Positions 35,601 to 64,000 of a DNA stretch of 64,000 bases are shown in pieces. Source of the stretch: Auanema rhodensis (lineage: Eukaryota > Animalia > Nematoda); contig OZ059897.1 in the NCBI GenBank assembly GCA_964057225.1, forward strand, positions 6,262,001 through 6,326,000, written 5' to 3'. Both the position numbers and the translations under genes were made by a program. The notes beneath the pieces were generated by a model. That model was not told where the DNA came from. It ran no database searches and saw only the letters and a list, made by a program, of their open reading frames with translations. The first letter of the stretch is position 1, and every line of letters starts with the position of its first letter.

Positions 35601-38600
35601 ATTACTCAAATGTTTAAAAGAGGGAGAAAATTGAAATTAAAAACAAATATTTCTCTTTATTTCTTTAATGTCGTATTTCTCTCTCTCTCTCTCTCTCTCT
35701 CTCTCTCTTTGTTCATCTGTGTGTCTGAATTAAGTAGTTATTCTCATTAAAGAAGCCTATGAAACCGCCTAAGGCTATAATATCTGCTTTTTGAAAGAAT
35801 TTGATCAGACTGCTTCTGTAAATTATCTAAAAACCTGTTACCAGATTCATGCCATCTGTCACACCATACTCATTACTTTTCAACTTCAAGAAAACCGGAT
35901 GAATACCAATGTTTTTTCGTACTTTCTTCTTGTCCAAGTTCAATAAAACGTAATCGAAATCTCATTTTCGTCGCAGAAAACATTGGGTTAGCTTTCGATT
36001 AGAATGAATTAGATGAAAATCGATGAAATGTCAAACACAATATGGAATCGAATACGTTGATTTGTCAACTACTTCTCAATATGTGCTGTTCTTTCTCCAA
36101 AATGTGTGGCCTGCCTAATACGCTAAAACCTAATTAGATCTTCAAAGTAGGCCAAGCCTGGAGCTTTCTCTTTAGCTCCAAATGATCAAGAAATGTGAGG
36201 GGAGAAAGCAGGGAAGAAAGGGGGTAAGCTGCTTTGAGAGAGTAGGACAGAGAGAGGACAAGCTTGAGGGTATCGTAGTTCAGCACACATTTACTATTTC
36301 TGTCTTCCTCCCGCTCTCCTTGTTACCTTATACTTATGTTCTATCTTTTCCAATATGTAACAAGACACTCTTCCTCTCTCCTGTATCTATCTGTCTTAAG
36401 AATCTCTTCTATGCAATTTATGGATGTAAGAGTAGAAGATTATAAAAGTATGGTCAGCACCATAGTATTAGTAATGAAATTGGGAAAAGTTTAGAATTTA
36501 GAGAAGATGAAAGAGACAATTATTGGTTAATTCACCTATTCATTTCTCTCTCTCTCTCTCTCTCTCTCTCTCTCTCTCTCTCTTCCTGTACTAAGAAAAT
36601 GTTCATAAGATACCAGATATCCTGAGACTATATTTACACATTAGATGAATTAAAACAAATAAATAAATTAGAAAAGATGATCAATGTAAATGGAGATCTA
36701 ATATTAAATGTAAATTAATGAATTTTCTAATTTCATTGATTGAGTCAATTCAAATAGTTCATCATTCATATCTATCAGTCAAATGTATCAGATGAAATCA
36801 TTGTGTCAGCTTGTTGCTCTACTTCACTAATTCATCATAAATGCTGATAGGCCTATTAGCTATCTGATAGATGGATAGATGTAAGATCAACTTCAACAAT
36901 CTCACAACATCTGATCTCTTGTACAGATAAAGCTAAATACCAGTTTCAGTGGATATCTTCATCACAAAGCTGTTCAGTCAGTATGTTCCACCAATTATGC
37001 AAATTATTTGTGCAGACCGAAAGAGAGAGAGTGACAAAGAGAGAGAGGGAGGGGGGAGTAGGAGTAAGTAGAAAGAGGACAACATGATGTAGGCTCACTA
37101 TAAGCTTGTAGCATGTTTTCATTGAATTGAACTATAAATTAGTTTAATATAACTACATATCAAACTACATCATTCAAATAAAATTTATAGAATAAGTTTA
37201 AAAGAAAGTTTTTTGGGATTGATACAACTTAGATATATAACATCCATCATACATGAGATTCATGTCTTTTATATCTGCCTATCAATCTTCATAATGCTTT
37301 AACAAGATGATCTTCTAGTCAATTTATTATCTGAGTTCATCTTATGTATGCTAATTTTAAGAAGCGTATTCTTCAACTTAAGCTCTAGAATAGTGTCAGT
37401 TAGGAAACTTTACAATATTATGCAAGTGAAACTACATTCTCACTACTCACAACTGAACAACAAGCTGAAGTTCATGAGCATCTCTTCCATGTTTGTTCTA
37501 ACAGCCAATATTATGCTAAAAGCATTCTACTCTTGGTGGGTTGTAGCAAAAAAACTGTAAATAAGAGGAAAATAATGTTTCTTTTCATAAGAACATCACA
37601 ACTATAGTATTCTGTGAATAATGAAGTTTAAATATACTGGATAACATAGCTAATTCAAAGCTTCTACTTGTTCGTTCAAGTGATTCATTCATTCAAATGC
37701 CATCGTTATGGCTAATTCCTGTAAAATTAGTTAGCGACTAAGTGGCAACGACAGAAACCACTTGTAAATCATTTCGAATTTTATGTTTCGCAATCAGTCC
37801 ATAAGTCTTAATCATGAACTCGTTAGATTCATTCTCTGTTCTGTGACTATATGTATCTGAGTATGATCATTTCACTCAGTCGAGCACTTCAAACGCATTC
37901 ATGCTCAAATGGCTTCAGATTCAGTTAGTCGTCAACTGTGGCAGAGGCGTCTGTACTACTACATAACAGAGAAATCGTCTCTTTCTTCAAGTGTTCAATT
38001 ACGAAAGCATGGAATGTAACAATTAAAGAGAACGGGGTGCAGAAGAACATATGCAGACAAATGAACAATGTCTCCTGATGATTAGAAATGTTGTAGGAAC
38101 AAAGAGGGTGAGAACGGAAGGGAAACACATAGAGAGAGAGAGAGTAAAAGGAACTACAAACATGTGTATTGAGAGAGATAGAGAGATAGAAAGGGATAGA
38201 GAAGAGGTTAAGGAAAGAAGACATAGTTAGTAGTAGAAGTATTTCAGGTCATAATCATCATAATAACTAAAGCTTTTAGAAAATTACAATTGTTCTGAGT
38301 AACTATGACGTAATCGTTGTATAATCGGAATTCTCAAATAAATACTCGATTCGTTAATATTTTTAAGACTTTTTTTTGAAAAAAAAATGAATATTCTATT
38401 TCATAACATTCAAATAATTTTAAATTCAAAATAGTTCACGTAAACTATCACGTGAATTCATTTGACGTGAACTATGTACATATTTATTAAAATTATTTAC
38501 TCTTATGAAAGTATAACAAGCGGTCGTATTCATCTTTTTCAATTTTCATGTTCGTGCAGATCTCATGCAAAGCTTTTCAGTCCGGATTCATCTGTGCATT

Positions 38601-40048
38601 TACCGTCATGGAACAGCACAGGAGGAAGTCCACGTGGAACATGGCAATCCGCAAGTTCCGATCCGTCAATAGATCAACACGATGGTATGGATGATGGATG
38701 CTTTTTAGAAGATACATCATCATTTGGAACATATGATAATATATGTGATGAGCATATCTATCATGAACTTGAGGTATAGTTTTGTATTTCTATTCAGTTT
38801 CTGTATGGTACAATCATTTCAGATGATTTGCCGACGTCCTGATCGCTCATATAGCTCAGACTGCTTATCATCTTCGGAACATGAATCACCGCTACCTAGC
38901 CGCGACTCTCCAATTTATGCTCAGCCATGGGTTCACTACCCTTCATTCCGACCTCAGCCTCAGCCTCAGCCTCCTACCTCATCTGTTCCAGTATCATCTC
39001 CTCTTATGTGTCGAAAGCTTCCTCAAGAGCCACACAATCTACAGTCTCAATCGATGCATAATAATTCCACTTTTCAACCATCCACTACACAAAATTATAG
39101 TGCCATACAGCCAGTAACACGTCGTCAATTGCCACGTCGTCCAACGTCACCAATATATGCTACACCATACTTTGGTCCAATGGCTAGGCCATATGTAGAA
39201 GAGTTTGGAGAGAAAGCTAATAGCTTTATATATCCCAACAGTTTTTTTAACCGTTTGGAAGCAACAAATCAAAAGAAAGAAGCTCCTCGTAACATGGAAG
39301 AAGCGGAAGAAGAGTTTCTTGAAGAACTTGATGCACAAATTAATGAGCTACAGGTAATTATAATTATATAAAATACTGAAATTTTCATTTTCATTAATCA
39401 AAATCCTTTAAAATTTTGATATATTTCACGATTTTTCAATATAAAGAAAGACCGCTAGACATCTTGTCATCATTAATATTTTCAACTGGAAAATGCTTTT
39501 GCTAATGCTCTACCATTTCCTTTGGGACAAATTTCGTTTTGCTAGTGTGAAATATGGCCTCAAGTCCAAGTATGACGACAAGACGCCGATCTGAGGTTTC
39601 TGTTTCTCAAAAGATAAATATCCTGCAGCTTGATAGTTGTCTAAGCTGGAAATTCTTTGAACTTTAGGCCATTCCTATGCTGAATATAAAATAAATTTTA
39701 CTTTCCTTTTCATAGAAATATGATCAATAGGCCTCTATTGGGATCTTTATAATTATTCTTCGGAAAGCCCATTTATCATTAAAATCATTTTGAGTACACC
39801 AGTTGAGGTCCAACATACATTTGAGCATAGAGTTTAATTTTTGTTTCTTTTTCATCGAAAACTTGGAAATGGAAAAATATTTACAATTTTATGTGTTTTT
39901 AAGATCAACTAATTTTTTTCTTTTTTTTCAGCAACGTTCCGACGAGCTTCGTCATCTGGTTGAACGTGCTCGCGTCCGTCGCGGTACAAACCACACAACT
40001 CAATGGTCTCGTCCAGTTCTTGAATGTACATTTGAGCTTGAGTTATAA
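32623..40048 (+). CDS. Uncharacterised, largely low-complexity protein (~393 aa) with a C-terminal coiled coil
   Basis: Exons 32623-32787, 33613-33661, 34593-34719, 38581-38773, 38823-39353, 39932-40048 join in one open frame with canonical sites; TTTTCAG just before ATG; motifs IRTNPW, CSSGYGSQD, HIYHELE, PIYAQPW, FLEELDAQINELQQRSDELRHLVE. Confidence 0.8.
38431..38526 (-). other. Bipartite element (CGACCG-N22-AAATAATTTT) plus downstream ACGT hairpin
   Basis: Perfect 11-bp inverted repeat ATAGTTCACGT/ACGTGAACTAT at 38431-38475. Confidence 0.45.
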
Positions 40049-62780: not shown

Positions 62781-64000
62781 CTAATACTTTGTACAGTATG
62801 CCATTATCACAAGATCTTCTTGCAATAGCTGTTCAATCTCGTTCTCTTTCTGATTTTCTTTTTATATTCATAACTATGCCAATACTTGATTTAATAAATT
62901 TGTTTTTAATGTTTTTTATGGAGAACTGACCTCTAAACCCTCTGTACTCGGCAGTTGTCGTCCAGTACCACGTGGCACATCACAAGAAGCACGTCGTAAC
63001 TGAATTTTTTAATTTTCAAAAAAATTTAATTTTTAATTCAAATTAATAGCATTAAATAATGTATGTTATTTGTTTAATTAAACGGAATTGATGTTTAGCT
63101 ATTTGCTTGATGATAGCTACTTTGAATAAAATATATAATTAGCATAGTTCACGCAAATATGCATGCAATGCGTGAAATATTCATTTCTGTTTTAGCTCAT
63201 ACGTAAACCGGTTGAATACACTTCCAGAATATAAATCCCAAAGCACTTTTCTGTTTTTATTAATTTTGTATTGTAAAAGAATAATATTATAGATTATATT
63301 ATATATGGAAGAATTTGAGTAGTTACCTCTTGTCCATCATTAACAGATAATAACTCAGCTGAATGAGCTCTTAATGGTAATTCGCCTACAGTTAAAAATG
63401 ATGAAGCTGAAATTTATTATTTTTTATTTCATTTAAACTATATGTAATAGCAGTACCTCTACTTTGAATATTTGCTTGAAAGTTATTGTGTTGAGGCAAA
63501 TCTTGATGACTTTGAACAAGGCTTCTTTGCACATATGGAGTTTCTTTTGGCATTAATGGAAACACCTGAGCTATTTTGGTTGGAGAACCGAAACATCCAG
63601 ATTCTCGATCTATTACTGTATCTATGCTGAAATTCAGTTAACTTAGTTTCTTATAATTTAAAAATATTTTACGTTTGTTCTTGAGAATGATCCTCTAAAA
63701 GAAGAGGGAGTGGTCGGCATTGGCTTGGCTGTTCACTTCGAATCTGTTCACGCTTCTGCTCCGGTTTGCATGTTCTGAAACTCAACAGGATTAAGATGAT
63801 CTGGTGATCTGATGACAGGCTTTCCAAGACAAAATAAAAATAGAGTCAAGTGTCTTGAAGAAAATTACATGTTCATGAATTATGAAACTCACGTTGTAAC
63901 CGGTGGTCGTTTTTTCAAACAGAAACGATACAGATAAACCGCAGTTATAACCACGGCCAGTCCGCCGACCACTCCTGATACGAGTACCGCGATAGTAAAC
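62781..64000 (-). CDS. 3' part of a single-pass membrane protein gene (5' end outside window; last exon tentative)
   Basis: FTIAVLVSGVVGGLAVVITAVYLYRFCLKKR (TM helix + basic stop-transfer), then in-frame exons TCKPEQ..., IDTVIDRE..., ASSFLTV..., LRRASCDVPRGTGRQLPSTEGLE, KENEIEQLLQEDL...*. Confidence 0.65.
63144..63214 (-). other. Bipartite element (CAACCG-N22-AAATGAATAT) plus TTCACGCA/TGCGTGAA hairpin, intronic
   Basis: 12-bp inverted repeat with one mismatch at 63144-63180. Confidence 0.5.

Follow-up and report, generated by a model that had tools for sequence, protein, structure and literature searches.

E-box-type sites, most likely not a hairpin RNA family, beside a putative initiator-plus-DPE promoter cassette in the nematode Auanema rhodensis

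A 64,000-nucleotide stretch of the genome of Auanema rhodensis (contig OZ059897.1; C5:6262001-6326000 of the 180.9-Mb nematode assembly), called the window in what follows, holds copies of a bipartite element, CAACCG-N22-AAATGAA, some of which are followed by ACGT-containing inverted repeats that an earlier note had described as a family of hairpins. Our analysis favors a different reading, to which we assign a rough probability of 0.55 on sequence evidence: the "hairpins" would be T-flanked E-box-type sites (consensus TTTCACGTGAA) upstream of a compact, TATA-less RNA polymerase II (Pol II) promoter cassette, made up of an initiator (Inr) and a downstream promoter element (DPE) and read on the strand opposite to the one considered in the note. 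Because each site is palindromic, two or more of them within 10 to 40 nt give inverted repeats, and the hairpin potential is then a by-product. Most likely, the hairpins are not selected RNA or DNA structures, and the cassette is a real cis-regulatory one. Arrays of palindromic binding sites can thus mimic hairpin families and covariation when few loci are read.

Results

The readable sample comprised 264 kb, i.e., the 64-kb window and an independent 200 kb (C1:9.39-9.59 Mb) in which another 23 or so copies of the element were counted, about 16 of those with boxes. Element positions are counted from CAACCG in the orientation used in the earlier note, and positions relative to the putative start site, A+1, refer to the opposite strand, on which the promoter is read. 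Genome-wide, CAACCG-N20-30-AAATGAA had 967 matches, versus 22 for the reversed pattern, and the exact N22 form had 615, versus 4 in the reversed control; the N22 spacing thus makes up 64% (615/967) of all N20-30 matches. The N22 sequence is fully variable between invariant flanks, and the spacers are likewise unrelated between copies. A position matrix of 27 aligned copies, taken on the opposite strand, reads TTCA+1TTT, then has G or A at +24 and A at +25, and places CGGTTG at +27 to +32, with T at +33 in 18/27; TTCA+1TTT is present in 27/27 copies by construction of the search, and its flanks are conserved as well.

The Inr consensus is BBCA+1BW in mammals and TCA+1GTY in the fly, the DPE is RGWYVT at +28 to +33, where TFIID contacts the CGG of +27 to +29, and the spacing between Inr and DPE is strict to a single base (PMC5580651). 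The initiator of the cassette matches BBCABW in full and TCAGTY at 5/6 positions. Furthermore, its downstream part is a complete match to both CGG and RGWYVT, and among the spacings N22 predominates.

The positional association of the bipartite element with ACGT boxes, which the earlier note had drawn from five loci, is real. CACGT lies 5 to 35 nt after AAATGAA at 268 places in the genome, versus 0 in the reversed control, with about 110 of the 268 matches contributed by one 727-bp tandem array on C3; at 5 to 35 nt before CAACCG, it occurs once genome-wide, and the boxes are thus one-sided (268 versus 1). Across 32 elements in the 264 kb, ACGT is enriched about 14-fold at element positions +40 to +80, and 16/31 box clusters of the same sample adjoin a core in the right orientation. 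The six copies in a cluster of lysozyme-like genes have no ACGT box, as had been stated. The 727-bp array itself (C3:15.86-16.06 Mb) has more than 100 units, arranged in blocks of both orientations, and every unit contains a complete CAACCG-N22-AAATGAA core with boxes. It was compared with 5S, spliced leader 1 (SL1), and U2 arrays and matched none of them. Another group of repeats, at C1:3.37-3.47 Mb (L001 to L008), is a dispersed repeat family whose copies carry an N21 variant, located about 430 nt ahead of histone H3 genes; these genes have a GC-box and TATA-like promoter of their own, the variant is without boxes, and the copies are probably unrelated to the cassette.

Each cluster has 1 to 5 boxes at spacings of 5 to 38 nt, in direct, inverted, or mixed arrays of half-sites. 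The logo built from 51 boxes is palindromic (T33 T30 C34, ACGT, G27 A28 A22), and the boxes show what is expected of a T-flanked E-box, namely, a CACGTG core preceded by T at the 5' side and followed by A at the 3' side. Perfect TCACGTGA pairs within 3 to 30 nt were counted 207 times genome-wide. The POU-octamer-like motif ATGCTAAT seems to be another part of the cassette: it is about 40-fold enriched 40 to 100 nt from CAACCG on the box side, where it is found in about 8/32 copies of the 264 kb, and it sits 13 to 26 nt past the hairpin in about a quarter of copies, in either orientation (window sites, 49843-49850 and 63138-63145). On the opposite strand, the motif ATTAGCAT (POU-octamer-like, about 40-fold enriched) is further upstream than the boxes, and the order of the module is ATTAGCAT-TTCACGTGAAn-TTCA(+1)TTT-N22-CGGTTGT. 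GATA sites are found near cassettes only occasionally. Two unrelated cassettes, one at 44069-44081 of the window and one on C1 (L018, near position 96,560 of the joined 200 kb), have in common the 13-mer ACGTGATAAGCGT, which combines an E-box half with a GATA site.

The sequences of the five window loci were as the earlier note had described them, with arms at 38431-38475, 52921-52957, 44064-44110, and 63144-63177 and no hairpin at 49814-49837. The "near-constant distance" from the element did not withstand a larger sample: at 61 places outside the array, the ACGT cores are spread evenly over the searched +41 to +71 (standard deviation, 8.8), and the register proposed in the note holds 9.8% of them versus 10% expected. 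The same is true of the "covariation" seen in the stem ends, since comparisons of same-locus with cross-locus pairs revealed no locus-specific complementarity of the flanks. Beyond ACGT, the outer stem can be extended by at best 7 bp for the copy at 38521 versus 0 to 3 bp in 11 other loci, and the mean extension is 1.42 bp within loci versus 1.52 bp for cross-locus pairings (P = 0.64). Flanks of box pairs from the same locus are identical at 5.50 of 16 positions when compared as direct repeats and at 5.60 of 16 when compared as inverted repeats; cross-locus comparison gives 5.19 and 5.26 of 16, respectively. The alignment of the four hairpins contains one T-A to C-G change, in the 63209 copy. 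The ATAG/CTAT and TTTT/AAAA flanks recur at other loci, where they lie within an extended palindromic site. At C3:17514197-17514256, five 13-nt TCACGTGAACTAT units stand in tandem, one of them with CGCGTG, and from these tandem units the ATAG/CTAT flanks can be taken as part of an extended palindromic site.

We also trained a covariance model on the four window hairpins. It returned E values below 0.01 for the training loci alone, and for these on both strands. The best other match in the rest of the window was the box pair at 60409 (E = 0.19), and nothing below E = 0.2 was obtained in the independent 200 kb. A search of the 64 kb against Rfam at the gathering threshold detected tRNAs alone, and with E values up to 1, the 38- to 64-kb part gave a single match, to mir-297 (51850-51920), which is below threshold (38.9 bits versus a gathering score of 90), lies in low-complexity sequence, and is most likely due to chance; no stem-bulge RNA (sbRNA), Y RNA, or other Rfam family was found at the sites. 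Compared with dinucleotide shuffles, 4/5 window loci fold with z scores of -2.2 to -3.7, and a z score below -2 was reached in only 2/19 independent loci.

Discussion

In our model, the rigid element, read on the opposite strand, would provide the initiator TTCA(+1)TTT and the DPE CGGTTGT at +27 to +33, with G/A at +24, the arrangement recognized by Drosophila TFIID (TAF1/2 and TAF6/9). The boxes (TTCACGTGAA type, often with ATGCTAAT nearby) would form an upstream activating zone from about -10 to -60, in which a dimeric factor of the basic helix-loop-helix type, with or without a leucine zipper (bHLH or bHLH-ZIP), and with a preference for T-flanked CACGTG, may activate initiation at A+1. Arrays of T-flanked E-boxes are the site type of MiT/TFE factors such as HLH-30/TFEB, and judged by its binding site, an HLH-30/TFEB-like factor would be the obvious candidate. 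An intronic cassette close to a 3' splice site could give rise to a short outron that is replaced by SL1, and with this replacement, the start site would be hidden from ordinary transcriptome sequencing (RNA-seq). An acceptor-like site no more than 150 nt downstream on the opposite strand was found in 48% of 33 copies, versus 27 to 30% in the other direction or at random places. In the window, two copies are placed 35 to 90 nt ahead of acceptors of exons on that strand, and a box pair holds the corresponding place at a third gene. Of the proposals made in the earlier note, a rigid enhancer module of E-box and GATA sites comes closest to this model: a regulatory module with E-boxes is retained, but its rigid part is CAACCG-N22-AAATGAA, the E-boxes are loosely spread over the zone upstream, and GATA sites occur only now and then.

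Several observations weigh against the promoter reading. When boxes were swapped between loci, the observed summed folding energy was -210, with a null of -175 +/- 13 (P ~0.01), and this excess means that some locus-specific complementarity exists. It derives mostly from the window loci selected for the earlier note (about 1.6 standard deviations with C1 only), and the residue could be due to this selection and to local duplication of boxes. The box-less copies of the lysozyme cluster would fire antisense to their host genes, the copy at 49759 has its register shifted by one base, and the initiator of the copy at 38521 is degenerate. Neither GC profile nor length of ATG-initiated open reading frames (ORFs) nor strand counts of acceptors, determined for 29 to 33 copies, gave a clear coding signal in either direction, and most copies in the 200 kb have no coding exon or long ATG-initiated ORF just downstream, whichever direction is considered. 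Finally, the DPE is reported not to be enriched in Caenorhabditis elegans (PMC3730108), so that its use in a rhabditid is putative.

The cassette shares with the Inr-plus-DPE promoters of Drosophila an A+1 in a TCA context, RGWYVT at +28 to +33 together with the CGG of +27 to +29 and the purine of +24, spacing to a single base, the lack of a TATA box, and activator sites immediately upstream. It differs from them in that its DPE is near-invariant (CGGTTG) instead of degenerate, that +2 is T and not G, that the host is a rhabditid, that many copies are intronic, and that its start site is a predicted one. The boxes resemble the CLEAR-type arrays (TCACGTGA; HLH-30/TFEB) in the palindromic CACGTG with T/A flanks, in their vicinity to a putative start, and in the frequent presence of at least two copies one helical turn apart. 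Unlike CLEAR-type arrays, many of them are half-sites or ACGT variants (TTACGT, TGACGT, CACGC), and the genes near cassettes encode uncharacterized disordered proteins and are not lysosomal genes. Should the cassette prove to be an active promoter, several hundred sites of a rhabditid would have a near-invariant Inr-plus-DPE core, an architecture regarded as characteristic of flies, as rare in humans, and as not enriched in C. elegans. The cassette would then offer a natural system for studying how TFIID reads downstream elements outside the arthropods and would also inform on intronic promoters that are combined with SL1 trans-splicing.

The alternatives differ in what they make of the same geometry. 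A cis-element other than a promoter, which resembles Inr and DPE only by coincidence, is possible but rather unlikely. Such an enhancer, silencer, or boundary would have a sequence-specific factor at CAACCG/AAATGAA and bHLH and POU proteins beside it. It would account for the half of the box clusters that have no core and for the many copies far from exons, and CAACCG fits the Myb-type site YAACNG; a chance match to two degenerate consensus motifs that are correctly ordered, share the correct strand, and keep single-base spacing, with CGG at +27 to +29, T at +33, and a purine at +24 included, is improbable, and the strict orientation of the boxes to the core (268 versus 1) is typical of promoters. 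Somewhat more doubtful is a short capped RNA unit, piRNA-like (PIWI-interacting RNA) or from a paused polymerase, that is transcribed in the same direction as the proposed promoter. Here, N22 would be the body of the RNA, with U at +3 as in YRNT, CGGTTG would be a pause or termination signal, and the E-boxes would replace the Ruby motif. In favor of such a unit, N22 is fully variable between invariant flanks, CATT at -1 to +3 fits YRNT, exact CTGTTTCA is only 1.9-fold over control genome-wide, Ruby-type geometry is absent from the 264 kb, and the copies are dispersed, often intronic, and without downstream coding sequence. In "P-type" nematodes, the introns of active genes harbor the piRNA loci, which rely on pausing signals downstream (PMC6436959), and the dispersed intronic copies match loci of this kind. 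In addition, the likeness to Ruby-motif 21U-RNA genes extends to the many dispersed, oriented short units, to the fixed signals on either side of about 21 variable nt, and to a signal near +28 on the downstream side. Unlike those genes, the cassette lacks GTTTC on the transcribed strand at about -40, has another downstream element, and is present in far fewer copies; strict copies number roughly 600 to 1000, whereas known species have piRNA loci in excess of 10,000. The GTTTC motif is conserved in all Clade V piRNA promoters (PMC6436959). On the opposite strand, the boxes of the cassette read ACGTGAAA, which puts GTTTC on the wrong strand for a Ruby-motif gene, and the downstream signal known for piRNAs is a region of low melting temperature and not a GC-rich hexamer. 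A search for Ruby-type piRNA promoters gave no matching geometry in either orientation, and in the orientation of the earlier note, no T or YRNT was found at a fixed position downstream of the boxes. More speculative still would be a lineage-specific type of gene, in which Pol II, driven by E-boxes and Inr/DPE, pauses at CGGTTG and releases an RNA of about 28 nt with N22 as its body; were this true, it would represent a piRNA-like system in which a promoter rebuilt out of general core-promoter parts has taken the place of the Ruby/SNAPc motif.

Hairpin RNAs of 35 to 45 nt (or sbRNA/Y-like RNAs), made from the element as a small nuclear RNA (snRNA)-type promoter with a SNAPc-bound proximal sequence element (PSE) and a TATA-like box in the orientation of the earlier note, are improbable, and the idea has been largely refuted by the sequence tests. 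The z scores of 4/5 window loci and the compensatory-looking pair of the 63209 copy speak for it, as do several copies in which the first box is preceded by CAACCG at about -57 and by AAATGAA at about -28. With SNAPc/PSE promoters and stem-bulge/Y RNAs, the element also has in common a bipartite upstream part of fixed internal spacing and a hairpin-capable region about 55 to 60 nt from the first motif. The covariance model, in contrast, recognized no significant member beyond its four training loci and gave scores on both strands, folding below a z score of -2 was rare at independent loci (2/19), the flanks do not covary, the distance is not fixed, the number, spacing, and orientation of the boxes vary, Rfam gave no match, and no start signal stands at a fixed position downstream of the boxes. 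The canonical SL1 leader occurs 1267 times in the genome, mostly in a 252-bp tandem array; CAACCG was found 35 to 65 nt upstream of 0/1267 SL1 RNA genes, and no copy of the element was found in the U2 array region (C1:10.96-11.28 Mb). An snRNA-type promoter was discarded on this ground, as the SL1 and U2 genes of the same genome are without the element. Unlike stem-bulge/Y RNAs, the copies have no conserved structure. The least probable of all, in our view, are termini of mobile elements, either Helitron-like with a 3' hairpin followed by CTAA-T or of miniature inverted-repeat transposable elements (MITEs), and a DNA cruciform. A Helitron 3' end has a hairpin followed by CTRR, to which ATGCTAAT within 13 to 26 nt of the hairpin in a quarter of copies bears a superficial likeness. 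In a true Helitron terminus, the whole terminal sequence is related and the hairpin lies 10 to 12 nt before CTRR, neither of which was found here: the copies have only short motifs in common, with N22, spacers, and flanks unrelated, unlike transposon copies, and this speaks equally against the cruciform or rolling-circle terminus considered in the earlier note. The number and arrangement of boxes vary, most copies lack ATGCTAAT, which is found in either orientation, and no full-length element that ends at the motifs with target-site signatures was seen in the 264 kb.

The motif of programmed DNA elimination was considered as well. In the species, published as A. rhodense, this motif is a 29-base palindrome at 28 break sites (bioRxiv 10.64898/2026.08.27.747507). 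The published palindrome is a different one and is limited to those 28 break sites, and the candidate was ruled out.

Window loci and gene context

The copy at 38521 has its box cluster ("hairpin") at 38431-38475 (+), with three ACGT-core boxes and 11-bp perfect outer arms, about -20 to -64 from the putative start. Its degenerate core (38492-38526, +) reads TTA(+1, 38495)TTT, N22, and CGGTCG at +27 to +32. This core is placed at the 3' end of an intron of about 3.8 kb, 35 nt before the acceptor (38559) of a plus-strand exon. The intron is the longest of the host gene (window 32623-39353, +), which encodes a disordered protein of about 400 amino acids. The gene model was derived from a relative of 409 amino acids with 72% identity (P0001; representative search), and relatives of the protein are found in other nematodes (P0001 to P0006). 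For protein searches, exons were queried one at a time by reference; a homologous-protein search with the exon of this gene returned nothing, and Pfam and Atlas searches with the neighboring genes gave no family or informative neighbor.

The copy at 44159 has 4 to 5 ACGT/GCGT cores in its box cluster (44064-44110, +), followed by the core (44130-44164, +) with TCA(+1, 44133)TTT, N22, and CGGTTG at 44159-44164 (+27 to +32). At 53004, the box cluster ("hairpin"; 52921-52957, +) forms a 17-bp stem if G-U pairs are counted, and the core (52975-53009, +) reads TTCA(+1, 52978)TTC, N22, and CGGTTG (53004-53009). The box pair of the copy at 63209 (63138-63177, +) is CACGC...GCGTG, the CGC/GCG case of the earlier note, and overlaps ATGCTAAT; its core (63180-63214, +) consists of TTCA(+1, 63183)TTT, N22, and CGGTTG (63209-63214). 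The copy at 49759 is on the minus strand, with a core (49759-49793, -) of TCA(+1, 49791)TTTT and a CGGTTG that is shifted by one base (N23); its boxes (49814-49850, -) are two half-boxes (CACGC and CACGT) and ATGCTAAT, without a hairpin. An acceptor-like site follows this core at about 60 nt, and at about 125 nt a coding-like exon starts with an ATG. In addition, a perfect TCACGTGA box pair without a recognizable Inr/DPE core is located at 60409-60435 (+), 85 nt before the acceptor (about 60521) of a plus-strand exon that belongs to a third gene.

The box-less copies at the lysozyme cluster are found at 11795-11829 (-), 14284-14318 (+), 17000-17034 (+), 17761-17795 (+), 20634-20668 (-), and 24363-24397 (+), either in a short internal intron (about 90 nt) or just 3' of lysozyme-like genes. 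In the orientation of the earlier note, they are in the sense of the genes. All of them have the extended AAATGAAAATTTGAA in common, and the copies at 11829 (-) and 14284 (+) are identical. The genes are called lysozyme-like from a reading of their exon translations, the short exons being unscored by Pfam.

Large arrays of 5S, U2, and tRNA genes are also present in the assembly. For the germline genome of A. rhodense, a size of 180 Mb and arrays of noncoding RNA (ncRNA) genes have been described (bioRxiv 10.64898/2026.08.27.747507). The GC-richer left end of the window carries 23 tRNA-Leu(TAA) genes in tandem with a period of 221 bp (162-5108, minus strand), an array that fits the ncRNA gene arrays described for the germline-restricted DNA of this species.

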